From Heterodontus francisci (Eukaryota), in NCBI RefSeq assembly GCF_036365525.1, contig NC_090409.1:39380437-39444436 (forward strand): a DNA stretch of 64,000 bases, read 5' to 3'. The stretch's first letter is position 1; the number at the start of each line of letters is the position of its first letter. The translations under genes were made by a program, and so were the position numbers. Positions 10,164 through 50,300 of the stretch are shown here, piece after piece. The notes below the pieces were generated by a model, which was given only the letters and a program-made list of their open reading frames with translations, did not search any database and was not told where the DNA came from.

Positions 10164-13100
10164 ATGGATGGAGAAGCGCTGCAGGTATTGTCAGTGTCTC
10201 ACACCCGGGGGGTCAGTAATGGGGAGAGGGACCATGGACTGTGTCAGGGCTGCTCCCGGTCTCAATGTGTCTCAGAGCCGGGAGGGTCAGTAATGGGGAG
10301 AGGGACCATGGACTGTGTCAGGGCTGCTCCCGGTCTCAATGTGTCTCAGAGCCGGGAGGGAGGGGGGTCAGTAATGGGGATTGGGACCATGGACTGTGTC
10401 CTGTCCCGGCTCAGTAATGGACATGAGCAGCAAGAAACTGTGGTAAAGGGGGGTAACTGTGTTTTCTTGTTGCAGGGACCCAACTTACAGAAACTCCTCC
10501 TCCTGCTGCTGCTGCTAAATGCTGTTGCTGCTGTTTCAGGTAAGCGCTGTGACTGCTCTCACATTTCAGCAGAGTTCGGGGCTGCTGGTGACATGGATTA
10601 TATCAGGATTTATCTTCCTGGATGGTGCTAACCTTGTGAATTTATACAGACTGCAGTTAGCTGTCTCCTGGAAAGAACATTTGTCTGGGTGTCTGGGACT
10701 GAAATCAGTAATGTGTATATTACTGGGGAATAGTGTTCATTATATCAGGAGTTCATCTTGCTTTAAGGTGCTGTGTTCACTGTGAGTGGGCCCATTGAGG
10801 GAGTGGACACAGTCGGTTCACATTACACATAATGATCATGAGACCTGAAAGGAAGGCAGTTAATGTCTTCAGATTAACCCCTGTGATGTGAACAGTGGAA
10901 TCTGGACACTGAGCAACACTCGGTGACACTGGGATGGGTGACTGGGGTCCAGTGGTACTGGGATGGGGTCCTGAGCACTGGGATCAGGAGTCTGGGACAG
11001 TCCTGGATCAAATAGAACTGGGAATTGCCTCTGAGCATGGGGAGTAGGGTCATCAGGACTGGGGGTTGTGTTTTGGGTCCTGGGAGGGGGCAGAGTCTGG
11101 CCGTATTGGGGTGAGGAGCAAGGTCTGACAGGTTAGTGGTGGAGGGAGGTGAGGATCCACATTGCCTCGGCCCCTTTCAGACCATCAGGTGCTGCCTCAC
11201 CCCCTACACAGTGTACTCGTCCGTCATTGTCCCCCCAACCTGTCCAAAGCCCTTTCCACATCCTCGGGTACCCCCTCCCCCACCCGTTCCTGTCTTTACA
11301 TTTCAGGGTCAGTTTTCTGCTCCTGAGCTCCACCTCACATTGTGCACCCCCAGTCTGTCATTGTTCTCCCAAAGGGGGGAGGTGGGCAGGGTGACCAATA
11401 TCCTGATGTGTTCTCCCAGCATGTGTACAATGGGAAACACACGATTCAAAGTGCTGTCCAGCTGCTCTGTGGATACAAATATCCAGCACAAGCTGGTTTT
11501 AGTTGAAGGCCCTTAATGTCTGACCTTTAACCTTCCCACAGAAATGAAAGCAGTGAGTTACTGATCAGTGCTTCTTGTAAATCAAGCATCGCAGTGTAAC
11601 CATGTGGAGCTTGGGATGGAATGTACCAGCAGGGAGGTTATATCTGTGGATAAATACTTTCAATCTTTTCCAGGTTACTCGCCTGTCCCAGTTTCTGGGT
11701 TCCTTGGGGAGCAGGTTGTGCTGCCCTGTATCTACAAAGGGAATGTCCCAGTCTCTGATTTACAGGTAATTTGGTGGATATGCAAGCGTGGAGTATCACA
11801 TAATTTTGTCGATGGAAATGATGATTTGACACTACAAGACCCGCAGTTCAGAAACAGAACAAACCTGTTCCAAGATCAACTGGAACAAGGCAACTGGTCA
11901 CTTATGATCTCTGACCTCAGGCAGTCAGACCAGAATGAGTATCAGTGTGAGATTACTGAGAGGACAGGTGTGGTCTTTCTTCAAGATGTCCATCTCTCTG
12001 TAACAGGTGAGAGGTTTCTGTTTCAGGTATTCTGCATTTACTCTCTGATTTTATGGGTACGGTAGTGCAGTGGTTATGTTACTAGACTAGTAATCCAGAG
12101 GCCTGGACTAATGATCCAGAGAACGTGAGTTCAAATCCCACCATGGCACTTTCAGAATTTGAATTCAGTTTGAAATAATTTTGGAAATATAAAGCTGGTC
12201 CCATGCCCTCCTTGCAACTCTCACTTCCACCTAGTTTTGTGTCATCTGCAAAATTGAAAATATTGATCTCCACATCCAAATCATTGATCTAGATTGTTAA
12301 TAGCTGGGCCCAAGCACCGATCCTTGTAGTATCCCACTTGTAACAGCCTGCCAACCTGGAAATGACCCATTTATTCCGACTCTCTGTTTTCTGTCTGTTA
12401 ACCAGTTCTCAATCCCTGCCAGTATATTCACTCCAATCCCATGTGTTCTCATTTTGTTTACCAACCTCTTGTGTGGGACTTTTTCAGAAGCTTTCTGAAA
12501 ATCCAGTTACAGCACATCCACCTCTTCCCTCCCTTTTCTATTCTGTTAGTTACATCTCAAAAAAAAAAACTCCAACAGGTTTATAAACCATGACTTCCCT
12601 TTCATAAATCCAGGTTGACTCTGCCCAATCCTACCATTATTATCGAAGTGTCCAGTTTTCACACCCTTTATTGTAAATTCTAGCATTTTCCCTATAACTG
12701 ATGTCTAGGCTAACAGGCCTGTAGTTCCCTGTTTTCTCTCTCCCTCCTTTCTTAAACAGTTGGGTTACATTTACCACCTTCCAGTCTGCGGGAACCATTC
12801 CAGAGTCTACAGAATTTTGAAAGATGACCACTAATGCATCAACTATCTCTACAGCCACCTCTTTCAACATGCTGGGATATAGATCATCAGGTCCAGAGGA
12901 TTTATCTACTTTCAGTCCCACTAATTTCTCTTGTACTTGTTTATTAATATTGGTATCTTGCAGTTCCTTGTTTACACTAGTCCCTTGATTCTCCATTATT
13001 TCTGGGAGCTGTTTAGTATTTTCCTCTGTGAAGACAGACACAAAGTATTTGTTTTATTTTCTCTGCCATTTCCTTAGAATCATAGAGAGATACAGCATCA

Positions 13101-14883
13101 AAACAGACCCTTTGGCCCACCGAGTCTGCGCTGACCATTAACCACCCATTTACATTAATCCTACATTAATCCCATTTTCCTTCTCACATCCCCTCAATTC
13201 TCCTACTATCTACCTACGCTAGGGGTAATTTTTTTTTTTTACAATGGTCTATTTACCTATTAACCCGCAAGGAAACCGGAGCACCCGGAGGAAACCCACA
13301 TGGTCAGAGAGAGAGCTTGCAAACTCTGCACAGGCGGTACCCAGACTGAACCCGGGTCACTGGAGCTGTGAGGCTGCAGTGTTAACCACTGTGCCGCCCT
13401 TGTTCCCAATTATAAATTCTCCTAAGTCTGTTTGTAATGGACCCACATTTGTCTTTGCTAATCTTTTCTGTTTTACAGATCTGGAGAAGCTTTTACAGTC
13501 TGTTTTTATGTTTCTCGCTAATTTACTCTCGTATTCTATTTTCCCTTTCTTAAACTTTTTCCCGGTCCTCCTTTGCAGAATTTTGAAATGTTCCCAATCC
13601 TCAGGATTAACATTTTTTTTGGCAACTTTATACGCCTCTTCCTTTGCTCCAATACAATCCTTGATTTCTTTTGTTAGCTACAGTTGGAACACTTTCCTTG
13701 CTGGGATTTTGTACATTAAAGAAATGCATTTTTGTTGTAAACTATGTATTAGATCTTCAGGTGTGAGCAATTGCCTGTCTACCGTCACACACAATACTAA
13801 ACACATGATGTTTTCTTTAGAGCGAGCTCGTACACCTGGACTGAACACACCTGTACTGAACACACCTGTACCAGGTAAATCTGTTTCTAAACTACTGCAT
13901 GTGTTTTTAGATTTTACATATGCTCACACTGAATGGGTAATAAGTCCAACAATATGTGCGAGGAGCTCATGGACTGTTCTGTCACTACGTTCGAGACCAT
14001 TCGATCAGCTGCCTCTGTCGTGTCCCTCCCTTCCACTAGCACACCTGGCCAAACTTCCTATAATCCTGCCCTAACCCTGAACTCCCATCTTTCTCTGGTT
14101 TCTCTCCTATTTCCACTCATTCCCTGTTTGAGCTCATCTTGTCCATGAGACCCACCTCCTGTTCCCTTGATCCTGTTCCTGCTAAACTACCGAAAACCCA
14201 CCTTTCCCTCTTGGTTGTAATGTTAGTCGATATTGTAAATGCTTGTCTCCAGGTGTTATCTGCCTCTCCTGTAAATCTGGCGAGATCATTCCTATCCTCA
14301 AAAAAATAACCCTTAACCTTTGGAAACTACTGTCCAATCTCCTACCTCCCTTTCCCCTCCCAAATCCTTTAATGTGTTGTCACCTTCCAAATCTTTTCCC
14401 ATCTTTCCGGGAACTCCAGGAGCTGGATGTAAACCAGCATCCATCCAATCCTGTGATTTTCACGAGTTTAAAATTCCTGCTCTATTTCAGCGAGCTGTTG
14501 GGTTTAATTGAAGGGAAGCTGCTGCTGGTCAGTGTCCAGTTATCTCCATTGGAAAGCATGTATCTATCAGACTGTGGGGCAGTGTGTGTGTGTGTGTGTG
14601 AGATTATTGATATTTAACCTCCCACATTCCTCCAGGACTAGAATTGACCAGGGATGTGTTTGTACTGAGGATGGTTCTGAAACACTAGGTGCTGACGGTC
14701 TCTGCTGTTAGTTTTGTTAGTGTGTCCCAGTCTGTTAACAGCTTCATTCTGTCTCTAGGTCCTGGACTCTCTACTGGAGCAGTAGTTGGATTGGTCATCG
14801 CAATTCTTGTGCTTATTTGCATAATTCTTGTTCTTGTTTGCATAATTCTGGATTTCATAATCCGAAACCGACAAAGATGGTGA
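10164..14883 (+). CDS. Paralog A: single-IgV type-I membrane protein, B7-family/butyrophilin-like (CD276/VTCN1/MOG-like)
   Basis: Exons 10164-10184 (MDGEALQ), 10476-10539 (signal peptide), 11674-12006 (IgV), 13821-13874 (stalk ERARTPGLNTPVLNTPVP) and 14759-14879 (TM ...IRNRQR). All introns are GT-AG with compatible phases 0/1/1/1. The end is set at the read-through stop; the true last exon is uncertain. Confidence 0.85.
10208..10400 (+). repeat. 81-bp minisatellite in paralog A intron 1 (2 units, the first with a 7-bp deletion)
   Basis: Intron length 291 = 136 + 74 + 81. Confidence 0.9.
11674..12006 (+). CDS. IgV exon of paralog A
   Basis: 333 nt, phase 1-1; VVLPC...W...QDPQFRNRTNLFQDQLEQGNWSLMISDLRQSDQNEYQC, a B7/BTN-type V-set signature. 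Confidence 0.92.
12205..13755 (-). mobile_element. Old CR1 ORF2 remnant in paralog A intron 3, shared with paralog B, with an A-specific HE1 SINE at ~13078-13398
   Basis: ORF 12640-13041 (KSSGPDDLYP...GNYRPVSL) is nearly identical to ORF 27011-27415. Confidence 0.85.
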
Positions 14884-16964
14884 GTTCTGGAATGTTCCGC
14901 AGTTCCCATTGTTAATTCTGGTTTTGTTTTATTATATTTGGTGTTGTGGAAATGTTGTGTGCACTGATACACTTTGTGCTGTGTGGGATGTTTCAATGCT
15001 GCATTATCCAGTCACTTCTAGCTTGTTGTCATCCTCTAGCTGCTGAACTGAAGGTGAAGAGCAGGAATGTGCGGCTCCCTCTATCACACAGTTAATAGAC
15101 ACTCGCCTAATCTCTGCAGCAAACAACTCACCAGCCTACACCTAAAATCCCCTTGGCCCCTCTCCTCTGACTTTTCACCAGCCTCTGATCCTTGATCTGT
15201 TCCCCAGTCACTGACTCCATCCCCCTCCCTGGCCACTGTTTGAGGCTGAACCAGACTGTTCACAACCTCGGAGTCCCATCAGACCCTGAGCTGAGCTTCT
15301 GAATCCAAATCCTCTCCATCACTCTAATACCACCTAGCTCCACCTCTGAGTATACCCTATGTTTGCTCCCATCTCTTGAGATCCTCACCCATGCCTTTGT
15401 TATCATCAAAATCAACTATTCCAATGTTCCCCTGGCCAATTCCACTTTGCACCCTCCGTAAATTTGAGCTCATCCAAACCTCTGCTGCCCCGTATCCGAA
15501 CTCACACCAAGTCTTGTTTTCCCATCACTCCTGTACTCACTGACCTACATTCATCCTCATGTTCAAATCCGCAACCCGCCAGCCCCCCCCCCCCCCACCA
15601 AAGTCTCTGTAACTTCCTCCAGCCCTACAACTCAGAGATCTTTGTGTATCCCCCAATTTCCATCACTCCATCATTGGCGGCTGTGCCTTCAGATGTCTGG
15701 GCCCCAAGCTCTGGAATTTCCTCCTGAAACCTCTCTGCCTCTCCCTTAAAAGCTCTCTCTGAGCTTTTGGTCACATGTCCTAAAATCTTTTCACACGGCT
15801 CGTTGTCTTTGTTTGAACAGTCACTCCCGTGAAATGCCTTCGGATTGTGAAGCTGTGAAAGAAATGCAAGTTATTGCCCAACCTCCATTTGTGTTTACAT
15901 TTTTTAAACCACTCCCTGTGATCCGGCCATCTTGGATTTCTCTGTCTCCCTCAACATCCACATCTCCCTGCCCACCTCTTACCCACCTGCCAGTGGGGAG
16001 GGGGAACTATTGCAGATTCTCTAACTCTGTCCTCCGACTCTTTCCCCCATTTCGATATTTCTGCCTCCGTCAGCCTGTTTGGTCACTGCTGGGTCGGGTT
16101 TGATCACATCCGGGAATATCCTGTCCATCTGTGATTCCTCTCAATAATTCAGGATCAGTCTGGAGAGTCCGGACATTCCCAGTCTCCTCCTGTCTGATCT
16201 GATCCCTATCATCTTCAGCTCAGTGTTAACTGAGATCCTCATCAATTCTTCTTAATCTCCAATGTTGAGGTGAGCTGTCATTTTTCTATTGGTCTGGTGT
16301 CTTGGTCAGCACAGGTCCTGTGGAGTGTCCAGCTCTTGCCCATTGCCTCCTCTATAAGCCTCCTCTCCTCTACACTCTGTGCTCCATCACCGTGCAGCTC
16401 CTGTGACCCATTTTCCAGCTGCCATTGGTGCCCAGGATGTTGAGTGTAATTTAATTGGTCTGTGTTCCTGAACAGCTCCTTTACACACTTGTACAAAGTG
16501 TTGGATTCTTTTAATGTAACCTGAACTCTGCTGTTTTTTCCCTCCCAGGAAAGAGAACAAACACAGCATCAAGCACAATGCAGCATCTAATGACCCCCCT
16601 TTGACAGGGGTGACTTGTTCAGGTGAAACACGGGACCTTGTGACGACAGCACCTGAGCATCAGAATGGAGCAGCTGAAGAACAAAACCTTCTGGGGAACG
16701 GGGCTGTCCAGCACTAACTGAGTTTACACTGCACTGAGCCTGGGTCAGGGAGGGGAAAATCAGCCCAGTGTTGTGGTTATCCAGTGAATCCTGGTGGAAA
16801 GTCTGAGTTCAGGATTGGGATCAACAATCACTTCCCTAGTTGTCCACCAGCTTTTAGTGATTGGTGCATCTTGGACTAGGATTTCTCTGCTGTACAGTTC
16901 CTCATCACACTGTTTGTGTATGGAATTTATATTGTAAATATTTATATGTGTTAACAATTGAAAC

Positions 16965-21561: not shown

Positions 21562-21843
21562 ATGGATGGAAAAGCGCTGCAGGTATTGTCAGTGTCTCAC
21601 CCGGGAGAGGGAGACGGATCTGGGGGAAACTTTCCTTTCTTTCCCCCCAGGATTCGCCTCTTTACTGTTTGTCTCCATTTCTGGGCTTTGTCTCCCTGAC
21701 CCTGGGGCAGGGTCTCGTTTATAAAAGGAGAAATGTCGACATTTGAGATGGAGTGAGAGAAACTGACTTTAGACTGAAAATAAACACCCGGCTGTTAATC
21801 TACACCCGGGGGTGGGGAACACAGTGACACATCCCGGCTCAGA
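21562..21843 (+). pseudogene. Orphan exon 1 plus partial intron 1 of the IgV family (relic E)
   Basis: 21562-21582 encodes MDGKALQ with donor GTATTG. The following ~260 nt match paralog B intron 1 (33420-33707). It is truncated where a Tx1 element begins, and no signal or IgV exon follows. Confidence 0.7.
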
Positions 21844-21849
21844 AATTGA

Positions 21850-25263: not shown

Positions 25264-28200
25264 TCACCATCTTTGTCGCTTTCGGACAACAAAAACCACA
25301 ATTACAGCAATGAGGAGGAGAAGATGAAGAATTCCGATGACCAATCCAACTATTGCTTCAGTAGAGAGTCCACGACCTGGAGACAGAATGAAGCTGTTAA
25401 CAGACTGGGACACACTAACAAAACTAACAGCAGAGACAGTCAGCACCTAGTGTTTCAGAACCATCCCTAGTACAAACACATCCCTGGTCAATTCTAGTCC
25501 TGGAGGGATGTGGGATGTTAAATACCAATAATCACACACACACACACACACACCAAGCCACCCACAGTTCCTTGCACACACTCACTGCCCCACAGTCTGA
25601 TTGATACATGCTTTCCAATGGAGAGAACTGGACACTGACCAGCAGCAGCCTCCCTTCAAGTTGGGAATGGAAAGGGAGTTTGGAGATGGAACAACAGCTT
25701 CCAAGGGTGAGGGGTTGTTTTTTTTTGAGGAGGGGGTGATGATGGTGGATTTAAAAGGAGGAACAGAGAATATCTGAAGAGAAAGAACCATTTAAAATAC
25801 CGGCTCACGTGGGACCAGGAGGGAAAGTTGGATGATTAGTAGTTTAGCAGGAACAGGATCAAGGGGACAGGAGGTGGGTCTCATGGACAAGATGAGTTTA
25901 GAGAGGGAATGAGTGGAAATAGGAGAGAAACCAGAGAAAGATGAGAGTTCAGGGTTAGGGCAGGGGGGAGGATTATAGGAGGTTTAGCCAGGTGGGCGAC
26001 TGGAAGGGAGGGACACAGCAGAAGCAGCACAGTGGCACAGTGTTTAGCACTGCAGCCTCACAGCTCCAGCGACCCGGGTTCAATTCTGGGTGCTGCCCGT
26101 GTGGAGTTTGCAAGTTCTCCCTGTGTCTGCGTGGGTTTCCTCCGGGTGCTCCGGTTTCCTCCCACAGCCAGAAGACTTGCAGGTTGATAGGTAAATTGGC
26201 CATTGTAAATTGCCCCTAGTATAGGTAGGTGGTAGGGAAATATAGAGACAGGTGGGGACATGGTAAGAGTATGGGATGAATGTAGGATTAGTATAAATGG
26301 GTGGTTGATGGTCGGCTCAGACTCGGTGGGCCGAACGGCCTGTTTCAGTGTTGTATCTCGAAATAAATATTTTTAAAAAGAGACAGCTGATCGAATGGTC
26401 TCGAACTTAGTGACAGAACAGTCCATGAGCTCCTCGCACGTATTGTTGGACTTATTACCCATTCAGTGTGAGCATATGTAAAATCTCAAAACACATGCAG
26501 TAGTTTAGAAACAGATTTACCTGGTACAGGTGTGTTCAGTACAGGTGGGCAATTGCGCTCTAAAGAAAACATCATGTGTTTAGTATTGTGTGTGACGGTA
26601 GACAGGCAATTGCTCACACCTGAAGATCTAATACACAGTTTACAACAAAAATGCATTTCTTTAATGTAAAAAATCCCAGCAAGAAAAGTGTTCCAACTGT
26701 AGCTAACAAAAGAAATCAAGGATTGTATTAGAGCAAAGGAAGAGGCGTATAAAGTTGTCAAAAAAATGTTAATCCTGAGGATTGGGAACATTTCAAAATT
26801 CTGCAAAGGAGGACCGGGACAAAGTTTAAGAAAGGGAAATAGAATACGAGAGTAAATTAGCGAGAAACATAAAAACAGACTGTAAAAGCTTCTCCAGATC
26901 TGCAAAACAGAAAAGATTAGCAAAGACAAATGTGGGTCCATTACAAACAGACTTAGGAGAATTTATAATTGGGAACAAGGAAATGGCAGAGAAAATAAAA
27001 CAAATACTTTGTGTCTGTCTTCACAGAGGAAAATACTAAACACCTCCCAGAAATAATGGAGAATCAAGGGACTAGTGTAAACAAGGAACTGCAAGATACC
27101 AATATTAATAAACAAGTACAAGAGAAATTAGTGGGACTGAAAGTAGATAAATCCTCTGGACCTGATGATCTATATCCCAGCATGTTGAAAGAGGTGGCTG
27201 TAGAGATAGTTGATGCATTAGTGGTCATCTTTCAAAATTCTGTAGACTCTGGAATGGTTCCCGCAGACTGGAAGGTGGTAAATGTAACCCAACTGTTTAA
27301 GAAAGGAGGGAGAGAGAAAACAGGGAACTACAGACCTGTTAGCCTAGACATCAGTTATAGGGAAAATGCTAGAATCTACAATAAAGGATGTGATAACTGG
27401 ACACTTCGAAAATAATGGTAGGATTGGGCAGAGTCAACCTGGATTTATGAAAGGGAAATCATGTTTTATAAACCTGTTGGAGTTTTTTTTTGAGATGTAA
27501 CTAACAGAATAGAAAAGGGAGGGAAGAGGTGGATGTGCGATATCTGGATTTGAAGAAAACCTCTGATAAAGTCCCACACAAGAGGTTGGTAAACAAAATG
27601 AGAACACATGGGATTGGAGTGAATATACTGGCAGGGATTGAGAACTGGTTAACAGACAGAAAACAGAGAGTCGGAATAAATGGGTCATTTCCAGGTTGGC
27701 AGGTTGTTACAAGTTGGATACTACAAGGAACAGTGCTTGGGCCCAGCTATTAACAATCTAGATCAATGATTTGGATGTGGGGATTAAATGTAATATTTCC
27801 AAGTTTGCAGAAGACAAAAAACTAGGTGGAAGTGAGAGTTGTGAGGAGGACGCAAAGAGGCTTCAAGGAGATATGGAGAGGTTAAGCAAGTGGGCAAAAG
27901 ATTGGAGAAATGTGAGGTAATCCACTTTGGGAGGGAAAACAGAAATACAGAGTATTTCTTAAACAGTGAGAGGCTGGGAATGTTGAATTTCAAAAGGACT
28001 TGGGTGTCCTTGTTCATGAGTCACTGAAAGCTAACATGCAGGTACAGCAAGCAATTAAAACAGCTAATGGTATGTTGGTTTTTATTACAAGAGGATTTGA
28101 GTATAGGAGTAAAGACTGCAATTATATAGAGCCTTGGTGAGACTGCATCTGGAGTATTGTGTAGTTTTGGTCTCATTACCAAAGGAAAGATACACTTGCC

Positions 28201-31200: not shown

Positions 31201-33728
31201 TCGTGTTTGCCATCACCATCCGAGGAAAAAGACTCTCACTATCCAACCTATCTAACCCTCTGATTATCTTATATGTCTCTATTAAGTCACCTCTCCTCCT
31301 CCTTCTCTCCAATGAAAACAACCTCAAGTCCCTCAGCCTTCCCTCCATACCAGGCAACATCCTAGTAAATCTCCTCTGCACCCTTTCCATAGCTTCCACA
31401 TCCTTCCTATAATGCAGTGACCAGAACTGCACGCAATACTCCAGGTGCGGTCTCACCAGAGTTTTGTACAGCTGCAGCATGACCTCGTGGCTCCGAAACT
31501 CGATCCCCCTACTAATAAAAGCTAATACACCATATGCCTTCTTAACAGCCCTATTAACCTGGGTAGCAACCTTCAGGGATTTATGCACCTGGACACCAAG
31601 ATCTCTCTGTTCATCTACACTACCAAGAATCTTCCCATTAGCCCAGTACTCTGCATTCCTGTTACTCCTTCCAAAGTGAATCACCTCGCACTTTTCCACA
31701 TTAAACTCCATTTGCCATCTCTCAGCCCAGCTCTGCAGCCTATCTATGTCCCTCTGTACCCTACAACACCCTTCGACACTATCCACAACTCCACCGACCT
31801 TCGTGTCATCCGCAAATTTACTAACCCACCCTTCTACACCCTCATCCAGGTCATTTATAAAAATGACAAACAGCAGTGGCCCCAAAACAGATCCTTGCGG
31901 TACACCACTAGTAACTAAACTCCAGAATGAACATTTGCCATCAACCACCACCCTCTGTCTTCTTTCAGCTAGCCAATTTCTGATCCAAAGCTCTAAATCA
32001 CCTTCAACCCCATACTTCCGTATTTTCTGCAATAGCCTACCATGGGGAACCTTATCAAACGCCTTACTGAAATCCATATACACCACATCCACTGCTTTAC
32101 CCTCATCCACCTGTTTGGTCACCTTCTCGAAAAACTCAATAAGGTTTGTGAGGCACGACCTACCCGTCACAAAACTGTGCTGACTATCGCTAATAAGGAA
32201 CTCCTGCAGTGATGTCCTGGAGCTCAGATGATTGACCTCCAACAACCACAACCATCTTCCTTTGTGCTAGGTATGACTTCAGCCAGCGGAGGGTTTTCCC
32301 CGATTCCCATCGACCTCAGTTTTGCGAGGGCTCCTTGATGCCATATTCGGTCAAATGCTGCCTTGATGTCAACGGCAGTCACTCTCACCTCACCTCTGGA
32401 TTACTAGTCCAGGCCTCTGGATTACTAGTCTAGTAACATAACCACTGCACTACTGTACCAATAAAATCAGAGTAAATGCAGAATACCTGAAACAGAAACC
32501 TCTCACCTGTTACAGAGAGATCGACATCTTGATGAAAGACAACATCTGCCCTCTTGTAAAACTGGCACACATACTTGTACTGGTCTGACTGCCTGAGGTC
32601 AGAGATCATAACTGACCAGTTGCCTTGTTCCAGTTGATCTTTGAACAGGTTTGTTCTGTTTCTGAACCGTGGGTCTTGTAGTGCCAAATCATCATTTCCA
32701 TTGACAAATTTGTGTAAAACTCCACGCTTGAATATCCACCAAATTACCTGGAAATCAGAGACTGGGACATTCTCTTTGTAGACACATGGCAGCACAACCT
32801 GCTCCCCAAGGAACCCAGAAACTGGGACAGGCGAGTAACCTGGAAAAGATTGAAAGTATTTATCCACAGATATAACCTCCCTGCTGGTACATTCCATCCC
32901 AAGCTTCACATGGTTACACTGCGATGCTTGATTTACAAGAAGCACTGATCAGTAACTCACTGCTTTCATTTCTGTGGGAAGGTTAAAGGTCAGGCATTAA
33001 GGGCCTTCAACTAAAACCAGCTTGTGCTGGATATTTGTATCCACAGAGCAGCTGGACAGCACTTTGAATCGTGTGTTTCCCATTGTACACATGCTGGGAG
33101 AACACATCAGGATATTGGTCACCCTGCCCACCTCCCCCCTTTGGGAGAACAATGACAGACCAGTGAACTGGCAGTGAGATCCCCAAACAAACACTGGATT
33201 TGGGACTGAGGTTTGCAGAATCACCCAGGCTTCAACACTGAACCAACTAATCCGAGCTCTGCTGAACGTGAGAGCAGTCACAGCGCTTACCTGAAACAGC
33301 AGCAACAGCATTTAGCAGCAGCAGGAGGAGGAGGAGTTTCTGTAAGTTGGGTCCCTGCAACAAGAAAACACAGTTACCCCCCTTTACCACAGTTTCTTGC
33401 TGCTCATGTCCATTTCTGAACCGGACTGTGTCACTGTGTCCCCCACCCCTGGGTGTAGATTAACAGCTAGGTGTTTATTTTCAGTTTAAACACAGTTTCT
33501 CTCGCTCCATCTCCTGTCTGACATTTCTCCTTTTATAAATGAGACCCTGCCCCAGGGTCAGGAAGACAACGCCCCGAAATGGAACAAACTCTCCTCCTTT
33601 TTTTTTTAGAGGGAGACAAACAATAAAGAGGCGAATCCTCGGGGAGAGAAAGGAAAGTTTCCCCCACATCCCCCTCCCTCTCCCCGGGTGTGAGACACTG
33701 ACAATACCTGCAGCGCTTTTCCATCCAT
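25264..33728 (-). CDS. Paralog B: single-IgV type-I membrane protein, B7-family/butyrophilin-like
   Basis: Exons 33728-33708 (MDGKALQ), 33354-33291 (signal), 32839-32507 (IgV), 26559-26521 (stalk ERNCPPVLNTPVP) and 25376-25268 (TM GRGLSTEAIVGLVIGILHLLLLIAVIVVFVVRKRQR). Introns are GT-AG with compatible phases; the last exon is uncertain. Confidence 0.85.
26025..26365 (+). mobile_element. HE1-like V-SINE
   Basis: Full head, V-domain and tail, as at 4685-5040. Confidence 0.88.
26620..28715 (+). mobile_element. Old CR1 ORF2 remnant plus 3' UTR in paralog B intron 3
   Basis: ORFs 27011-27415, 27529-27753 and 28210-28627 carry degenerate CR1 RT motifs. Confidence 0.85.
29961..32393 (-). mobile_element. 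CR1/L2-group LINE 3' part, specific to paralog B
   Basis: PQGSVRGPTIFSCFINDL...FAGDCT...YKAQVRSVMEYS; A-rich tail; flanked by ctctggatta at 29951-29960 and 32394-32403. Confidence 0.85.
30947..32195 (-). mobile_element. Young CR1 nested inside the previous LINE
   Basis: ORF 31022-32251 with intact RT motifs; AGGAA duplicated at 30942-30946 and 32196-32200; (ttctaa)n tail. Confidence 0.92.
32507..32839 (-). CDS. IgV exon of paralog B
   Basis: 333 nt, phase 1-1, canonical C/W/DxxxYxC residues. Confidence 0.92.
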
Positions 33729-34938: not shown

Positions 34939-34944
34939 TGGAGA

Positions 34945-36084: not shown

Positions 36085-36195
36085 ATTACTGACCCCCCCG
36101 AGTGTGAGACACTGACAGTACCTGAAACCCCTTTTCTATCGTCAAGGCCTCGATCATCCCCTCCCGGAGACAGGGGAGCTGCTGCTGCTCAGCCG
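36085..36195 (-). pseudogene. ATG-less homolog of the family's exon 1 and intron-1 start
   Basis: Reverse complement reads ...gatagaaaaggggtttcag|GTACTGtcagtgtctcacactcgggggggtcagtaatgg, matching the exon-1 donor region of A, C and D. Confidence 0.55.
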
Positions 36196-37933: not shown

Positions 37934-38277
37934 AGATGTTAAAGTCCCTTATTTTCCCTAGCCCTCATGCACACACCACACATCCATTCAAAAACTGGTT
38001 AACCGGGGGAGGAAAAAGGAGTTTGGTTTACAGCTGTTTCATAGGAATGAAAAGAACAATTAAAAAAAAACGTTGTCATGATCTGGAAGGAAGATCTTTG
38101 GTTTGGCGAGGTGAACCAAAGTCGAATAGTTGGATGCCACTCGAAGTCTTTCCAGGTGAGGATGAGCCGTCGATGATGGGTAGGCTTTCAAAGAACCTCA
38201 ACAAAAGAAGGCTTTATATAAGGCTTTCCATCAGGTATGCAGCATGAAGGCTCTTTGGTCTTACAGCAGCAGTAAAG

Positions 38278-41329: not shown

Positions 41330-41402
41330 GGACCCTAATGAGATTTGAACTCACAACTCATGGTTTACAAGACCAGCTCTCTAACCCCTGAGTAATGGAG
41401 CC
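41330..41402 (-). pseudogene. tRNA-Thr(TGT) pseudogene
   Basis: Reverse complement GGCTCCATTACTCAGGGGTTAGAGAGCTGGTCTTGTAAACCATGAGTTGTGAGTTCAAATCTCATTAGGGTCC resembles vertebrate tRNA-Thr-TGT. The anticodon loop is intact; D, anticodon and acceptor stems carry mismatches. Confidence 0.75.
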
Positions 41403-41807
41403 AGATGTCAGCGAGGAGGAGGCAGGAGTCGGAGAAGAACACCGGCTTGACGTCAGTGGATCCGACTGTGAATGCGCGGGACACAAACAGGAAGTCAATC
41501 CTGGAATGGACGGACCCGTCTGGTCTTCACCAGGTCTATCTACACTCTGCTCCATCTGCAGGCCAAGACATTGTGCAGCTTGGCCTCTTTGACTGTTTCC
41601 ATTTGGAGTCTGGACGGGGCTGAGTAAATTGGTCCTATATTCTGTGGAGTTCAGAAAAATGAGAGGTGATCTAATTGATTCTGAAAGGGTTTGATAGGGT
41701 AGAAGCTGAGAGATTGTTCCCGCTGGTCGGGGGATCTAGAACATGGGGACACAGTCTCAGGATAAGGGGCCAATCATTCAGGACTGAGATGAGGAGAAAT
41801 TATTTCA

Positions 41808-43745
41808 GGTATAGGCAGCTGGGATCAAGCGAGTCCCTCGGAGTATAAGGGATGCAGGAGTACACTTAAGAAGGAAATTAGGAGGGCGAAAAGGGGCCAT
41901 GAGATTTCCCTGGCAGATAAGATAAAGGAGAATCCTAAAAGATTCTGTAAGTTTTTAAGAGTAAAAGGGTAGCGAGGGAGAGAGTAGGTCCCCTTAAGGA
42001 TCAGTGTGGTAATGTATGTGAGGAGCCACTGGAAATGGGCGAGGTCTTAAATGAATACTTCTCGTCTGTATTTACCATGGAGAAGGTCATGGAATCTAGT
42101 GAGTTCAAGGGAGGGAACAGCGATATCCTGGAGCCTATCAACATTACAAAGGAGGAGGTGTTGGAGGTTTTGAAGCGCATTAAGGTGGATAAATCCCCAG
42201 GGCCTGACCAGATGCATCCTAGGACATTATGGGAAGCAAGGGAGGAGATTGCTGGGGCCCTGGCAGAGATTTTTGTATCATTGTTAGCCACGGGTGAGGT
42301 ACCGGAAGACTGGAGGATATCTAATGTTGTGCCTTTAAGAAGGGCAGCAGGGATAAGCGAGGGAACTACAGGCCGGTGAGCCTTACATCAGTAGTGGGAA
42401 AGTTATTGGAAGGGATTCTGAGAGACAGGATCTATATGCATTTGGAAAGGCATGGTCTGATTCGGGATAGTAAGCATGGCTTTGTATGTGGGAAATCATG
42501 TCTCACAAATTTGATTGAGTTTTTTGAGGAGGTGACTAAGAGGATTGATGATGGCAGGGTGGTGGACGTTGTCTACATGGACTTTAGCAAGGCCTTTGAC
42601 AAGGTCCCGCATGGTAGGCTGGTCTGGAAGGTTCGAACACATGGGATCCATGGTGAGCTAGCCAATTGGATACAAGATTGGTTTGGTGATGGGAGGCAGA
42701 GGGTGGTAGTGGAGGGTTGTTTTTCAGATCGGAGGCCGGTGACCAGTGGTGTGCCGCAGGGATTGGTGCTGGGCCCTCTGTTTGTCATATATATTAATGA
42801 CATGGATGAGAATGTAGGGGGCATGATTGGTAAGTTTGCAGATAACACCAAAATTGGTGGTGTAGTGGACAGTGAAGAAGGTTGTCTAAGATTACAACAG
42901 GATATAGATAAACTGGGAAAGTGGGCAAGGGATTGACAAATGGAATTTAACGCAGACAAGTGTGAAATTATGCATTTTGGGACGCTAAACCAGGGCAGGA
43001 CATATACAGTGAATGGCAGGGCCCTGGGGAGTGTTGTTGAGCAGAGAGACCCTGGGGTGCAAGTACATAGTTCCCTGAAAGTGGCAACACAGGTAGACAG
43101 GATGGTGAAGAAGGCATATGGCATGCTTGCATTACGGCCGAGGCATTGAGTACAAGAGTTGGGACGTCCTGTTACAGTTGTACATAACGTTGGTTCGGCC
43201 GCATTTGGAGTACTGTGTGCGGTTCTGGTCGCCGCACTACAGGAAAGATGTGATTAAGCTAGAGAGGGTGCAGAAAAGATTCACAAGGATGTTGCCTGGT
43301 TTGGAGGGCTTGAGTTATAAAGAGAGATTGGATAGGCTGGGTCTGTTTTCACTGGAGCTAAGGAGGTTGAGAGGGGACATGACAGAGGTATATAAAATTA
43401 TGAGAGGCATAGATAAGGTAGATAGCCAGAATCTATTTCCCATGGTAGGGGTGACTAAAACTGGAGGACATAGATTTAAGGTGAGAGGGAGGAGGTTTAA
43501 AGGAGTTCAAAGGGGTACATTTTTCACACAAAGAATAGTGGGTATCTGGAATGAGCTGCCAGAGGAGCTGGTGGAGGCAGGAACAGTAGCAACATTGAAG
43601 AGGCATCTGGACAGGTACTTGAATGAACAAGACATGGAGGGATATGGAATTAATGCAGGCAGGTGGGATTAGTATAGATAGGCATTATGGTCGGCATGGA
43701 CGCGGTGGGCCGAAGGGCCTGTTTCTATGCTGTACCACTCTAACT
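41808..43745 (+). mobile_element. CR1 LINE ORF2 3' portion
   Basis: ORFs 42035-43672 with RT motifs and frameshifts; same subfamily as 2040-4680; CR1 tail. Confidence 0.92.
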
Positions 43746-43754
43746 CTAAGTGAG

Positions 43755-43990
43755 CCTGGAGGCAACGGAAGACGAGCTCAATGTCATACCGAGGGTGAAA
43801 TTCATTGAGGTGGAGGCGGAAGGGGATAAAACAGAGTCCTTTGCTGAGTAAAGAACGTTCCCTGTCAGAGAGAGGAAGGTCTGAGGGTTTAGTGAATACA
43901 CAGCAAGGGGTCAGATCAGAGGGAAGTGAAGGGGAAGAAGGATCTGGAGAGGCAATAGTCCCCATCAGCTCCTGGAGCTGGTCTTCCTCA
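43755..43990 (-). mobile_element. Penelope-like ORF fragment
   Basis: CCVFTKPSDLPLSDRERSLLSKGLCFIP. Confidence 0.65.
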
Positions 43991-44024
43991 ACACCGGAAA
44001 TGAACTAAACAGAACTGAATCAGC

Positions 44025-44300
44025 CAAGGGGCGGGGCCAGGGGACTGTGGGCGGGGTTAGTAATGAGTGACAGGCCAGTCCGGCCGCTGATTGGGCGATT
44101 GGCTCTGAGACCCGCCACTGGGGCCAGGAGAAGTTGTTAGCCCCACCCCGGCGGGTCGAGCGCTGAGTGACAGGCGGGCCCGGTCGCTGATTGGGCGACC
44201 TGCTCTGACCCCGGCCCTGACTGCCAATAGAAGCCGTGCCCGCCAAGTATTGGTTTCTTTATAAACCGGATGAAGGGTTCAGGCAGATTCCCGCCATTTT
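44025..44300 (+). promoter_or_regulatory. Paralog C promoter (two modules plus a YY1-like site)
   Basis: GGGGCGGGGC; TGAGTGACAG-N16-ATTGG at ~44064 and ~44164; CCGCCATTTT at 44291. Confidence 0.7.
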
Positions 44301-44330
44301 CACTGGAGCTGGTGATCCAGGATCGGGGCA

Positions 44331-47300
44331 ATGGATAGAAAAGCACAGCAGGTATTGTCAGTGTCTCACACCCGGGGGGTCAGTCATGGGGAGAGGGACC
44401 ATGGACTGTTTCAGGGCTGCTCCCGGTCTCAATGTGTCTCAGAGCCGGGAGGGAGGGGAGTCAGTAATGTGGAGAGGGACCATGGACTGTGTCAGGGCTG
44501 CTCCCGGTCTCAATGTGTCTCAGAGCCGGGAGGGAGGGGGGTCAGTAATGGGGAGAGGGACCATGGACTGTGTCAGGGCTGCTCCCGGTCTCAATGTGTC
44601 TCAGAGCCGGGAGGGAGGAGGGTCAGTAATGGGGAGAGGGACCATGGACTGTGTCAGGGCTGCTCCCGATCTCAATGTGTCTCAGAGCCGGGAGGGAGGG
44701 GGGTCAGTAATGGGGAGAGGGACCATGGACTGTGTCAGGGCTGTTCCCGGTCTCAATGTGTCTCAGAGCCGGGAGGGAGGGAGGTCAGTAATGGGGAGAG
44801 GGACCATGGACTGTGTCAGGGCTGCTCCCGGTCTCAATGTGTCTCAGAGCCGGGAGGGAGGGGGGTCAGTAATGGGGAGAGGGACCATGGACTGTTTCAG
44901 GGCTGCTCCCGGTCTCAATGTGTCTCAGAGCCGGGAGGGAGGGGAGTCAGTAATGTGGAGAGGGACCATGGACTGTGTCAGGGCTGCTCCCGGTCTCAAT
45001 GTGTCTCAGAGCCGGGAGGGAGGAGGGTCAGTAATGGGGAGAGGGACCATGGACTGTGTCAGGGCTGCTCCCGGTCTCAATGTGTCTCAGAGCCGGGAGG
45101 GAGGGGGGTCAGTAATGGGGAGAGGGACCATGGACTGTGTCAGGGCTGCTCCCGGTCTCAATGTGTCTCAGAGCCGGGAGGGAGGGGGGTCAGTAATGGG
45201 GAGAGGGACCATGGACTGTGTCAGGGCTGCTCCCGATCTCAATGTGTCTCAGAGCCGGGAGGGAGGGGGGTCAGTAATGGGGAGAGGGACCATGGACTGT
45301 GTCAGGGCTGCTCCCGGTCTCAATGTGTCTCAGAGCCGGGAGGGAGGGAGGTCAGTAATGGGGAGAGGGACCATGGACTGTGTCAGGGCTGCTCCCGGTC
45401 TCAATGTGTCTCAGAGCCGGGAGGGAGGGGGGTCAGTAATGGGGAGAGGGACCATGGACTGTGTCAGGGCTGCTCCCGGTCTCAATGTGTCTCAGAGCCG
45501 GGAGGGAGGGAGGTCAGTAATGGGGAGTGGGACCATGGACTGTGTCAGGGCTGCTCCCGGTCTCAATGTGTCTCAGAGCCGGGAGGGAGGGGGGTCAGTA
45601 ATGGGGAGAGGGACCATGGACTGTGTCAGGGCTGCTCCCGGTCTCAATGTGTCTCAGAGCTGGGAGGGAGGGGGGTCAGTAATGGGGAGAGGGACCATGG
45701 ACTGTGTCAGGGCTGCTCCCGGTCTCCATGTGTCTCAGAGCCGGGAGGGAGGGGAGTCAGTAATGGGGAGAGGGACCATGGACTGTGTCAGGGCTGCTCC
45801 CGGTCTCAATGTGTCTCAGAGCCGGGAGGGAGGAGGGTCAGTAATGGGGAGAGGGACCATGGACTGTGTCCTGTCCCGGTTCAGAAATGGACATGAGCAG
45901 CAAGAAACTGTGGTAAAGGGGGGTAACTGTGTTTTCTTGTTGCAGGGACCCAACTTACAGAAACTCCTCCTCCTGCTGCTGCTGCTAAATGCTGTTGCTG
46001 CTGTTTCAGGTAAACGCTGTGACTGCTCTCACATTTCAGCAGAGCTCGGGGCTGCTGGTGATATGGATTATATCAGGATTGATCTTCCTGGATGGTGTTA
46101 ACCTTGTGAATTTATACAGACTGCAGTTAGCTATCTCCTGGAAAGAACATTTGTCTGGGTGTCTGGGACTGAAATCAGTAATGTGTATATTACTGGGGAA
46201 TCTTCTTCTTCTTTGGCCTCCTTGTCTCGAGAGACAATGGGTAAGCGCCTAGAGGTGGTCAGTGGTGTCAGTCGCTGTGAGGCAACTATGGAGTGACCTC
46301 TCCATGGCGCATGCCTGGGCGAATGTATGGAGGTTGAGAGTTGCCCAAGCGTCAAAACCCCCCTCTCGGCCTTTCTGGTGGGGTCCAAAGGAGTGCAGAG
46401 CACGACGTTTGGCACCGGTAGTATTCATTATATCAGGAATTCATCTTGCTTTAAGGTGCTGTGTTCACTGTGAGTGGGCCCATTGAGGGAGTGGACACAG
46501 TCGGTTCACATTACACATAATGATCATGAGACCTGAAAGGAAGGCAGTTAATGTCTTCAGATTAACCCCTGTGATGTGAACAGTGGAATCTGGACACTGA
46601 GTGTTAGTGAGAATGAATCTAGAAGAATCACTCGACACTTGGGTCTGCTCCAATGTCAAACAGTTTATTGAGTTACGCCAGCAGGGAGCAGGTCACTGGG
46701 CTGTCCAGATGCCCCTCCACTGAACAATGAAAAATCATCAATACTTATACATTTTCAAACAGTTACTCAGCCCATCCTTTCTGGACATGGTCCAATCATA
46801 ATGATTACAGATTCTCTCCATTGATTATTAAAGACCAATAGAAGTGGTTACCCGGTGTGAAAGGGGCTGCAGGACCAACCCATGGACAGATAGGGGATTA
46901 CTCATGATGTTTTCCATTCCTTTCTAGTCCCCATCCTTGGTTCTCCTGTACGCACACCACCTTATCTTAACCTTGTTACAGGCTGGTATCTTTGTCAGCA
47001 TTCCACATGGACATCTGCTCTCCATTGAATAAGTCTTTGAATTTATGTTACTCAGTTCCTGTGTGGAATGTGGTCAAGTTGGCTAAACCCCATGATGCCT
47101 TGCAAACTCTTCATTGTTCACTAAAATTACGTTACGAGTTACTCAAATAACATTTAAACAGGATGTTCTTTTCTGCAGGTGCCTCTGCGCTTGGGAATAC
47201 CCGTCAACACTGAGCAATACTCGGTGACACTGGGATGGGGTCCTGAGCACTGGGATCAGGAGTCTGGGACAGTCCTGGATCAAATAGAACTGGGAATTGC

Positions 47301-50300
47301 CTCTGAGCATGGGGAGTAGGGTCATCAGGATTGGGGATTGTGTTTTGGGTCCTGGGAGGGGGCAGAGTCTGGCCGTATTGGGGTGAGGAGCAAGGTCTGA
47401 CAGGTTAGTGGTGGAGGGAGGTAAGGATCCACATTGCCTCGGCCCCTTTCAGACCATCAGGTGCTGCCTCACCCCCTACACAGTGTACTCGTCCGTCATT
47501 GTCCCCCCAACCTGTCCAAAGCCCTTTCCACATCCTCGGGTACCCCCTCCCCCACCCGTTCCTGTCTTTACATTTCAGGGTCAGTTTTCTGCTCCTGAGC
47601 TCCACCTCACATTGTGCACCCCCAGTCTGTCATTGTTCTCCCAAAGGGGGGAGGTGGGCAGGGTGACCAATATCCTGATGTGTTCTCCCAGCATGTGTAC
47701 AATGGGAAACACACGATTCGAAGTGCTGTCCAGCTGCTCTGTGGATACAAATATCCAGCACAAGCTGGTTTTAGTTGAAAGCCCTTAATGCCTGACCTTT
47801 AACCTTCCCACAGAAATGAAAGCAGTGAGTTACTGATCAGTGCTTCTTGTAAATCAAGCATCGCAGTGTAACCATGTGGAGCTTGGGATGGAATGTACCA
47901 GCAGGGAGGTTATATCTGTGGATAAATACTTTCAATCTTTTCCAGGTTACTTGCCTGTCCCAGTTTCTGGGTTCCTTGGGGAGCAGGTTGTGCTGCCCTG
48001 TATCTACAAAGGGAATGTCCCAGTCTCTGAGTTACAGCTAATTTGGTGGATATCCAATCGTGAAATTTTACACAGATTTATCGATGGGAACGATGACTTA
48101 ATACAACAAGACCCACGGTTCAGAAACAGAACAAACCTGTTCAAAGATCAACTGGAGCAAGGCAACTGGTCACTAATGATCTCTGACCTCAGGCAGTCAG
48201 ACCAGAATGAGTATCAGTGTCAGATTTACAAGAGGATCGGTGAGCACTATCAATGGCAACAAGCTGATTCAGTCCATCTCTCTGTAACAGGTGAGAGGTT
48301 TCTGTTTCAGGTATTCTGCATTTACTCTCTGATTTTATGAGTACGGTAGTGCAGTGGTTATGTTACTGGACTAGTAATCCAGAAGCCTGGACTAATAATC
48401 CAGAGAACGTGGCTTCAAATCCCACCATGGCACTTTCAGAATTGAAATTCAGTTTAAAATAAATCTGGAAATATAAAGTTGGTCCCAATAAAAGTGACCA
48501 TGAAGCTGTTGGATTGTTGTAAAACCCAACTGGTTCACTAATGTCCCTCTCGGGAAGGAAACCTGCCATCCTTACCCGGTCTGGTCTATATGTGACTCCA
48601 GTCCCACATTAACCTGGTTAACTTTTAACTGCCCTCTGATTTGCTCGGTTACTTCAATCAGTTTGTATCAAACCACTAGAAAGAAAAAACAGACTAAAAC
48701 TGAACAGACCACTGGCTGTGACCCAGACATCAAATCAGGACACAGGAAAGGCAAACCCAGCCCAGTTGACACTGCAAAGTCCCCCTCGCTGACATCTGGA
48801 AATTGGTCTCCATGTTAGGCGAGCTGTGTGAGACAGTCACACTCACAGAATCAACCCTACATCCCAGACTCCTCTATCACCATCCCTGGGTATGTCTTGT
48901 CCCACTGGCAGGACAGACCCACCCGAGGTGGGGGCACAGTGGTATCCAGTCAGGAGGGAGTTTTTTATTCTTTTGCTGCATTTGCTGACAATGCATCCAC
49001 TCGGTGTCGCAATACTTGCACATGTGAAAATGCAGCCTGATCCACTGAAACGTCGCTGTCTGTGACCTTTTTGGCAGCTGCCAGTAATAAAGATGGCGAC
49101 GCTCAATTTATCACAAAACAAATGAAACACAAATGCCCACAGTGGCTGTGATCACTGCCTCCATCACACCCCCAACAGTACCTCGCTCCCTCCTGCCATC
49201 ACCACCTCCATCCCACCCCCAGCAATACCTCGCTCCCTCCTGCCATCGCCACCTCCATCAGTACCTCGCTCCCTCCTGACATCACTACCTCCATCCCACC
49301 CCCAGCAGTACCTCGCTCCCTCCTGCCTTCGCCACCTCCATCCCACCCCCAGCAGTACCTCGCTCCCTCCTGCCTTCGCCACCTCCATCCCACCCCCAGC
49401 AGTACTTCGCTCCCTCCTGCCATCGCCACCTCCATCCCACCCCCAGCAGTACCTCGCTCCCTCCTGCCATCGCCACCTCCATCCCACCCCCAGCAGTACC
49501 TCGCTCCCTCCTGCCATCGCCACCTCCATCCCACCCCCAGCAGTACCTCGCTCCCTCCTGCCATCGCCACCTCCATCCCACCCCCAGCAGTACTTCGCTC
49601 CCTCCTGACATCACTACCTCCATCCCACCCCCAGCAGTACCTCACTCCCTCCTGCCATCACCATCGCCATCCCACCCCCAACAGTACCTCGCTCCCTCCT
49701 GCCATCACCACCTCCATCCCACCCCCAGCAGTCCCTCGCTCCCTCCTGACATCGCCATCCCACCCCCAACAGTACCTCGCTCCCTCCTGCCATCGCCACC
49801 TCCATCCCACCCCCAGCAGTCCCTCGCTCCCTCCTGCCATCATTGCTGCCTACCGCAGCAGTCTACTCACCACTTGCTCCTGGCATCGCTGCTTCATTCC
49901 CTCTGCCATCCCTCTGCTCCCCTCCCCTGCTTATCTTTTCTGTCTCTGTGCGAGGAAGAAAGGCAGCAATCGCGGGACGGAGTGGGGAGGCTGGAGTGAA
50001 TGGCCCACAGATAGGTGGAGGTGTGAAGCGTGGAGTGAGTAGGTGGGGGGGTGGGTGGTGGAGGGCGGAGATGAAGCGAGGCTGGGGGTGAGCGGTGAGC
50101 AGACATTGCAGTACACAATGATGTTTGAGCGTAGACATGAGTAAGTCCTGGTAAACCGGGTGCTGACGTAGACTGCACATGGGCAGCACTGTACGAACAG
50201 CAAGACTCTGATCTGCACATGTGTGAAGCTGGGAGCTTCTGATGTTGGCAGTGGGTTGCGTTGTCAGCAGTCACTTTGTTTTATTTTATTCATGTTAGTG

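Follow-up and report, generated by a model that had tools for sequence, protein, structure and literature searches.

Mosaic divergence of IgV exons in a clustered shark family of single-V B7/butyrophilin-like genes

A 64,000-nt stretch of the genome of the horn shark Heterodontus francisci (NCBI RefSeq assembly GCF_036365525.1, contig NC_090409.1, positions 39,380,437 to 39,444,436 of the forward strand; hereafter the window, numbered from its first letter) contains three copies of a ~6-9 kb unit, as detected by self-comparison. Each unit holds a gene for a small type I membrane protein with one immunoglobulin V (IgV) domain of B7 type; genes A and C lie on the + strand and gene B on the - strand, and the three belong to a clustered shark-wide family. 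The IgV exons are islands of divergence beside near-identical introns, an observation made in the initial annotation of this DNA that we confirm as real and highly significant. We show here that divergence falls into three tiers, that the variable positions cluster on one sheet of the V domain, that the paralogs are related in a reticulate pattern, and that the family is expressed and spliced.

A shark-wide family of small single-V membrane proteins

Gene A reads, in order, as an ATG exon, a leader, a single IgV, a Pro/Thr stalk, a transmembrane segment and a 55-aa tail, and the RefSeq protein P0182 matches its leader, IgV, transmembrane and tail exons at 100%. All searches of the window used single-exon translations or database proteins as returned. 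The ATG exon of gene A, recognised by its start-codon exon motif, lies at about 10164 (+) and is followed by the hydrophobic leader (signal) exon at 10476..10539 (+), which is preceded by the acceptor ttgcag and joined to 11674 in RNA contigs. Then come the 1134-nt leader-IgV intron (10540..11673, +), skipped by these contigs with GT..AG ends, and the 333-nt IgV exon of phase 1-1 (11674..12006, +). Further downstream on the same strand are the Pro/Thr-rich stalk exon (13820..13888, approximate boundaries, found by tblastn with P0182 residues 140-162 and encoding a 23-aa stalk), the transmembrane exon (14758..14880, approximate boundaries, residues 158-198) and the cytoplasmic tail exon of 165 nt and 55 aa (16550..16714, residues 199-253). 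No IgC exon was found in gene A when P0182 was mapped onto the window.

The IgV exon of gene B (333 nt, 32507..32839, -) matches P0192 at 100% and is separated by an intron of about 451 nt (32840..33290, -) from a leader at 33357-33289, homology to A beginning at 33160. In gene C, the IgV exon (47946..48290, +) is of the long F-G type with 345 nt, that is 12 nt (4 aa) more than in A and B, and 115/116 of its residues match P0190; its leader-IgV intron of about 1936 nt (46010..47945, +) follows a leader at 45943-46011 and is nearly identical to that of A over 47229-47945. The three exons are flanked by the same acceptor, TCAATCTTTTCCAG, and the same donor, GTGAGAGGTT, and share the NRT and NWS sequons, while their F-G peptides read EITERTGVVFLQD in A, QFYKRADVVFHQD in B and QIYKRIGEHYQWQQADS in C. 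The exon coordinates, the peptides with their F-G segments, the four additional residues of C and the conserved sequons given in the initial annotation were all reproduced.

In RefSeq, genes A, B and C are named "MOG-like", and the family members of other sharks are labelled CD276 homolog, VTCN1-like, SCN4B-like, ICOS ligand-like, JAML or CD86-like, with about a dozen unrelated automatic names across the family. These names mislead and obscure membership in one family. Single-V members are 177-261 aa long, and homologues 53-93% identical to the query P0026 and 62-73% identical to the V domain of gene A occur in Stegostoma, Chiloscyllium, Rhincodon, Hemiscyllium, Scyliorhinus, Mustelus, Carcharodon, Cetorhinus and Pristiophorus. 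The literature searched, which took in parts of PMC12227049 and PMC12841164, yielded no account of this family.

The V domain belongs to the B7/butyrophilin branch of the Ig V-set and is not of the antigen-receptor, CD28 or CD300 type. Pfam V-set E-values are 9e-13, 3.7e-12 and 1.6e-11 for A, B and C, and the best matches among solved sequences are CD276 (1e-16) and VTCN1 (1e-14), followed by MOG in third place (7e-9), PD-L1 and BTN1A1. The AlphaFold2 (AF2) model of the gene A IgV, built on a 44-sequence alignment, has a pLDDT of 92.7 and nine strands (by DSSP, A 4-8, B 14-16, C 30-35, C' 39-45, C'' 48-49, D 62-64, E 76-78, F 87-95 and G 98-109), and its best fold matches are B7-H4 (4gos, E 5.7e-12, template-modelling score 0.88) and PD-L1, with scores ranging over 0.84-0.89. 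C18, W33 and C91, corresponding to the B-F disulphide and the C-strand Trp, are invariant in 44/44 shark sequences. Neither a J-like motif nor a recombination signal sequence was found at the V exon, which terminates in a splice donor. The IgC domain that follows the IgV in canonical B7 ligands has no counterpart, the P0182 mapping showing no further Ig exon, and the B30.2/PRY-SPRY domain of butyrophilins proper is lacking as well, the tail being a single exon of 55 aa and the precomputed Pfam hits being of V-set/Ig type only. MOG is a single-copy gene with a second hydrophobic segment after the transmembrane one. Orthology to MOG was rejected on the basis of its third rank after CD276 and VTCN1, of the one hydrophobic segment that follows the stalk in the shark genes, and of the many names within the family. 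As a separate observation, codon 36 of the gene A V exon (11781-11783) encodes an extra unpaired Cys in the CC' loop, present in gene A alone, at a position occupied by C, F or S among 12 paralogs. By analogy with chicken BG dimers, which are linked through a loop Cys according to PMC5043582, this residue could allow disulphide-linked dimers.

To follow transcription and variation, we used contigs from 4 of 24 listed public runs, with coded organism labels, aligned to A 10470-12046 at a likeness of at least 80%; runs X5 and X6 are guessed to be RNA, and such contigs give neither expression levels nor proof of absence. In X5, depth was 2e4-1.4e5 in exon bins and 48-136 in intron bins, and in X6 it was 1.2e3-7.6e3 in exon bins and mostly about 10 (4.8-170) in intron bins. 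Four contigs of X5 and one of X6 carry the GT..AG joint from leader to V exon, skipping the 1134 nt, and loose contig ends at 12006 continue into stalk-type and B-type transmembrane sequence. The exon depth in the RNA runs, the joint and these continuations indicate that the family is transcribed and spliced as modelled. Separately, run X1, guessed to be DNA, gave on 10536-11765 a single contig of 1822 nt, at depth 6.3, in which leader and IgV exon are joined, which is either a processed genomic copy or complementary DNA in the run.

Near-identical flanks and variable blocks in the unit

In the figures below, values given in threes refer to the pairs A-B, A-C and B-C. The last 321 nt of the leader-IgV intron (11353-11673) show 2, 3 and 3 differences (0.6-0.9%; 99.1-99.4% identical), and A and C differ at only 6/717 positions over 10957-11673 (99.2% identical). 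Over the 370 nt before the acceptor, where about three A-C differences had been noted by eye, exactly 3 were counted, at 11448, 11508 and 11519. The tract of A-C similarity spans ~1 kb, from ~10731 to ~11757, and stops at codon 28 of the V exon. The background of the unit, made up of the other introns, shared transposon fragments and other exons, stands at 158/3311, 175/2726 and 166/2409 differences (4.8%, 6.4% and 6.9%), so that the intron tract is more similar than its surroundings (p<=8e-5). Between the IgV exons, 32, 42 and 47 of the 333 aligned positions are different, and exon and intron divergence are clearly unequal (Fisher, p=4e-8, 3e-10 and 1e-11).

Within the exon, the differences are concentrated in two blocks (heterogeneity chi-square over four blocks, p=2e-5 to 2e-7). 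Block 1 comprises the end of the BC loop and strands C, C' and C'' (A 11757..11845, +; B 32756-32668, -; C 48029-48117, +) and shows 10, 20 and 17 differences of 89 (11%, 22% and 19%), above background at p=1e-2 to 1e-6. In the C-C'-C'' stretch, the earlier count of 12 amino-acid and 6 synonymous differences between A and C was reproduced. Block 2 covers the F strand, the FG turn and the G strand (A 11934..11990, +; B 32579-32523, -; C 48206-48274, +, with 12 extra nt); over 11934-12006, this F-G region differs at 17, 18 and 23 of 73 positions (23%, 25% and 32%), again above background (p<=1e-6). Across the comparisons of blocks with background, p ranged from 1e-2 down to 1e-9. The parts of the exon encoding the A and B strands and the D and E strands have 4-7 differences per 171, at or under background. 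Downstream, the intron 3' of the IgV exon contains a tRNA-derived short interspersed nuclear element (SINE; 12047..12200, +) that aligns in all three genes and whose tRNA head scores 23.6 bits in Rfam, under the 29-bit cut-off; the shared SINE region (12007-12120) shows 4/112, 4/114 and 6/112 differences, that is 3.5-5.4%.

Silent sites follow the same partition. Synonymous differences in the variable blocks amount to 7/33, 10/32 and 8/32 (21-31%), above background at p=9e-4, 3e-5 and 1e-3, and those in framework codons to 2.6-7.8%, equal to background. Among the codons of block 1 whose amino acid is unchanged, 3/23, 6/18 and 4/18 carry a silent difference, and gene C has four silent changes within the invariant G-N-D-D-L codons of C-C'-C''. 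In F-G, the excess is mostly non-synonymous, with 10-13/24 codons replaced. Since the blocks exceed the non-coding background at silent sites too, ordinary divergence since a single duplication is excluded. The common SINE at 3.5-5.4% and the silent divergence of the blocks above background point to a recent common ancestor for the flanks but not for the exon blocks, a difference that for block 1 requires a transfer of sequence. This transfer might have run in either direction, with flanks spreading over older genes or old cassettes being imported into young ones.

A raised silent and replacement rate could also be produced by targeted mutation, for instance germ-line hypermutation by an AID-like enzyme acting on the segments that resemble complementarity-determining regions (CDRs). 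The differences are indeed clustered and often adjacent (11955-11958, 11981-11985), and both kinds of change are raised in block 1. We nevertheless hold this explanation to be very improbable, given that whole cassettes are common to several paralogs unchanged, which fits transfer over repeated mutation, and that WRC/GYW hotspots are not enriched: 5/60 variable sites fall in the 34/333 hotspot positions (odds ratio 0.76, p=0.81). On the latter ground, AID-like hypermutation was rejected.

The near-identity of the introns raises a different question, namely whether they are a conserved non-coding element with a splicing or regulatory role, kept by purifying selection next to an exon undergoing ordinary paralog divergence with no gene conversion at all. 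Evidence for constraint exists at the 3' end, where the last ~45 nt (11629..11673, +), translated in the frame of the exon as REVISVDKYFQSFPG, are conserved across shark orders. Two read-through models, from Cetorhinus (P0003) and Rhincodon (P0184), carry exactly this peptide, and three further Cetorhinus models (P0155, P0157, P0181) depart from it by one residue. Contigs of two other organism labels are likewise 97-99% identical to the intron over 202-761 nt, an identity that cannot separate constraint from closeness of the species. Directly upstream of the conserved motif, however, 0/5 residues are identical in the Cetorhinus models, and identity further up is 68%. Moreover, the segment at A 10540-11352 is missing altogether from gene B, and still A and C show just 3 differences there over 396 positions; the variable blocks are 2-5 times more diverged than the non-coding background, silent sites included; and Rfam (E<=1, 10400-12300) returned a single match, the tRNA-like head of the SINE, and none in the leader-IgV intron. 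We conclude that only the 3' end of the intron, its last ~45-50 nt, is deeply constrained, and regard a conserved element spanning the intron as improbable. For the remaining ~270-670 nt, homogenisation is the best explanation of the near-identity among paralogs. The initial annotation had attributed the uniform flanks to gene conversion, and this stands for the bulk of the intron (0.6-0.9% against a background of 4.8-6.9%, p<=8e-5), the last ~45-50 nt being constrained instead. The possibility that the tract is a dispersed repeat was rejected, as it occurs only at A, B and C in the window and is covered by contigs of the DNA run to a depth similar to that of the adjacent sequence.

Positions 10895-11044 of the gene A intron, which yield the 68% figure, match in translation the annotated first exon of Cetorhinus P0003, whose splice partner is an acceptor lying some 40 nt before the usual site. 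This match may reflect an alternative transcript or an artefact of the model.

The run contigs reproduce the contrast between intron and exon. Single contigs cover 866 nt of the intron with 3 other letters in X1 and 761 nt with 8 in X6, which bears another label; X15, with a third label, gave intron contigs of 256 nt with 6 other letters, 202 nt with 6 and 63 nt with 0. Contigs over the exon have 6-18 other letters within lengths of 80-166 nt, and a site can be covered by as many as 10 variant contigs. Among the 40 of 94 difference rows listed, the 1134-nt intron accounts for 18 places, of which 4 are within the last 321 nt, and the 333-nt exon for 21. These data bear on the concern that collapse or polishing across paralogs produced near-identical introns in the assembly, to which paralog-rich clusters are prone. 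In independent contigs from four runs the intron is likewise invariant and the exon variable, the exon translations agree with RefSeq proteins at 100%, 100% and 115/116 residues, and the copies differ in context, orientation and intron length (1134, ~451 and ~1936 nt), so that we give an assembly artefact hardly any credence.

Several other features of the window accompany the three genes. The leader exon of a fourth family gene lies at 308..379 (-), identified by tblastn with P0182 residues 6-29 at 100%, and its IgV exon would fall beyond the window start. Tandem arrays of 81 nt are found directly upstream of the leader exons, at 44374-45870, 10138-10400 and 368-973 (- strand), with 18.5 copies (97% matches) before gene C and few before A and the fourth gene. 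The start-codon exon motif (MDG[EK]A...) recurs a third time, at 21562-21575 (+); this copy has no family IgV exon nearby, IgV matches in the window being confined to A, B and C, and may be a remnant first exon. The 12-kb gap between the divergently oriented genes B and C holds upstream alternative first exons of RefSeq isoforms, for gene C at 38078-38155 (+; P0190 residues 1-26) and for gene B at 36122-36157 (-; P0192 residues 1-12). As for the tail, its ~25 C-terminal residues (TAPEHQ.GAAGEQNLLGN..VQH; 16550-16714 and 52346-52510) are kept in Heterodontus, Rhincodon, Carcharodon and Stegostoma; it has no tyrosine motif, and its LL may be a sorting signal.

Exchange among paralogs, fold position and selection

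Heterodontus possesses at least 12 distinct V domains, and we examined 12 of these sequences for signs of exchange. The four-gamete test fails for 140/703 pairs of informative columns, and a PHI-like permutation test of refined incompatibility on amino-acid columns gave p=0.0004, 0.0046 and 0.0068 for windows of 3, 5 and 8 sites. A few F-G types are paired with differing versions of C-C'-C'': the B type occurs in 4 sequences, the EIQQRETPVFHQD type in 4 and the long C type in 2, A and P0178 each being unique. In a tree of 68 distinct V domains, from which identical duplicates had been removed beforehand, the 12/12 Heterodontus sequences form one clade (support 0.897), which divides into two sister groups, the 2 long-F-G genes on one side and the 10 short-F-G genes on the other (supports 0.96 and 0.93). 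Other sharks show the long F-G form, so the form shorter by 4 aa is probably derived. Despite this split in the exon tree, the introns of gene C, of the long lineage, and of A and B, of the short lineage, are at least 99% identical. The disagreement between exon and intron genealogies calls for gene conversion or recombination. Beside this, RefSeq models combine IgV types with transmembrane and tail types in various ways, representing either hybrid genes or chimeric models.

On the AF2 strand mapping, 29/56 positions in the BC/C/CC'/C'/C''/F/FG/G segments vary among A, B and C, vs 7/54 elsewhere (p=1.5e-5). The bias holds for the 12 Heterodontus V domains, with 33/56 variable positions on the front sheet vs 12/49 on the back (p=4e-4), a count in which the first five positions were dropped as some models start differently. 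In the 44 shark sequences, invariant and near-invariant columns lie in strands A, B, D and E and in the core of C and F, indicating that the same segments are variable throughout the family. The C'/C''/F/G (CFG) face is the one through which BTNL3 and BTN3A bind the T-cell receptor (TCR; PMC6868513). By the NG86 method, the ratio of non-synonymous to synonymous rates (dN/dS) is 0.82, 0.63 and 0.84 for the whole exon, 0.55, 0.35 and 0.75 for C-C'-C'', and 0.84, 1.22 and 1.09 for F-G. Positive and purifying selection acting together could yield such values, and so could weak constraint. The initial annotation named a dN/dS <=1 combined with variability spread over the two sheets as grounds for refutation; for the exon as a whole dN/dS is indeed <=1, but the variable sites do not have that spread, and by this rule the claim survives.

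We propose, with somewhat better than even confidence, that the IgV exons evolve as mosaics in which the flanks are homogenised and older binding-sheet cassettes are exchanged among paralogs and kept by selection for diversity. Non-allelic gene conversion or unequal crossing-over would hold the leader-IgV intron, together with the opening ~83 nt of the V exon, near-identical, while the C-C'-C'' and F-G segments, on the sheet that B7/butyrophilin V domains use for binding, would persist as older distinct cassettes that are also swapped among paralogs. Variants homogenising the binding face would then be selected against, in favour of a diverse germline repertoire, and the proteins would be expected to bind something through the C-C'-C''/F-G face.

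The last part of this proposal faces a serious rival, in which the least constrained blocks have drifted neutrally below the identity threshold of conversion and conversion tracts stop at their edges, with no selection for diversity. The near-identical tract does end at about codon 28, exactly where block 1 begins, block dN/dS values of 0.35-1.22 would suit neutrality or weak constraint, variability falls in the same columns in all the shark species with the invariant ones lying outside them, and the transmembrane exon, another loosely constrained segment, is a divergence peak as well. Such an escape from conversion fits less well with the changes in the F strand, which are radical, charge-reversing and at alternate, outward-facing positions (NEYQCEITER in A vs YKYVCQFYKR in B), or with invariant codons inside the blocks, such as G-N-D-D-L, that are under clear purifying selection. 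In addition, identical F-G cassettes are intact in 4 paralogs each, which suggests preserved units and not drifting sequence. Neutral escape appears to us possible, though on the unlikely side.

Several points weigh against mosaic evolution under selection for diversity. dN/dS is significantly above 1 nowhere (NG86, three sequences, small counts), and the diversifying selection put forward in the initial annotation is to that extent not borne out, and the host-pathogen arms race also suggested there is a conjecture, although its recognition of a B7-type IgV with variability on the side of the binding face is upheld. The transmembrane exon is a second divergence peak, with 20/100 differing columns for A-B and 24/100 for B-C (14758-14880, 25267-25377, 51078-51200), and islands therefore occur outside the binding face too. 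F-G has only a few purely silent codons (2/13, 0/14 and 1/11), so that an old age is well supported only for C-C'-C'', and the NG86 synonymous count of F-G derives largely from codons with multiple hits. Part of the intron identity, in the last ~45-50 nt, is due to constraint and not to conversion. The reticulation test uses RefSeq protein models, some of them possibly chimeric (P0197 has two V domains), and the DNA comparison of A, B and C, having three taxa only, cannot itself show incongruence. The fold mapping, finally, is at the level of strands and takes no account of side-chain exposure. Selection for diversity as the force that maintains the cassettes is thus plausible but unproven.

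Known systems with similar traits and meaning of the finding

The closest precedent is the exchange of cassettes in the V domains of chicken BG genes. Like A, B and C, these encode a single extracellular IgV with a transmembrane segment and a tail and form a clustered multigene family, and with its segmental V exchange the shark family is of the chicken BG type in this respect. As reported in PMC5043582 and PMC4046983, the BG cluster is dynamic, with hybrid genes, short V-domain cassettes swapped between paralogs as detected by the phi test, and poorly resolved trees of the extracellular region. The BG cassettes lie in the CDR1- and CDR2-equivalent loops (PMC5043582), whereas those of the shark lie in the C-C'-C'' and F-G strands. 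BG genes are arranged in tandem in one orientation, and the shark genes are found in both. BG tails are long heptad-repeat coiled coils encoded by many 21-nt exons; the shark tail, by contrast, is encoded by one 165-nt exon and has about 55 aa. The nearest solved relatives of the shark family are B7-H3, B7-H4 and PD-L1, and its likeness to BG is one of architecture and exchange pattern.

These three B7 proteins, the best matches in both sequence and fold, share with the family the F.D.L..GN.S motif between strands D and E. They are, however, single-copy conserved IgV-IgC molecules, whereas the shark proteins, 25-30% identical to them, have no IgC and at least 12 paralogs in one species. Mammalian BTN/BTNL/Skint proteins, ligands of gamma-delta T cells, resemble the shark family in having an IgV of the B7 superfamily and lineage-specific multigene clusters, and the BTN/BTNL CFG face carries the specificity for particular TCR V regions (PMC6868513). 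BTN/BTNL proteins combine IgV with IgC and usually with B30.2, and the shark family has neither of the latter two. In major histocompatibility complex (MHC) class I and II genes, recombination or conversion keeps the introns alike, the exon segments are of much greater age, and silent differences are more frequent around functional sites; there the pattern is for the most part one between alleles, with ample documentation of dN/dS >1 at binding sites. The same genealogical contrast of intron and exon is seen in the shark, between paralogs in this case and with a dN/dS not significantly >1.

The mosaic pattern is therefore known from other immune gene families and is found here in a shark family that is undescribed in the literature searched. 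We would tentatively, and with low confidence, carry the comparison further: the family could be a highly expressed, germline-diversified repertoire of single-V B7/BTN-like molecules whose CFG-type face is varied by cassette exchange within uniform surroundings, a cartilaginous-fish counterpart of chicken BG or of mammalian BTNL/Skint. Each cassette type might then engage a different receptor of innate-like lymphocytes, for example gamma-delta TCR V families or NKp30-like receptors, in a mode of recognition that would lie at the base of the jawed vertebrates. If the cassettes are kept by selection, the family would be a new case of germline-encoded diversity on the binding face of B7/BTN molecules and, if so, the phylogenetically deepest one, the other examples cited coming from birds and mammals. 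For comparative immunologists asking which shark receptors these proteins engage, it offers a defined target: a single species has at least 12 expressed paralogs, and two delimited variable segments are set in a uniform scaffold.

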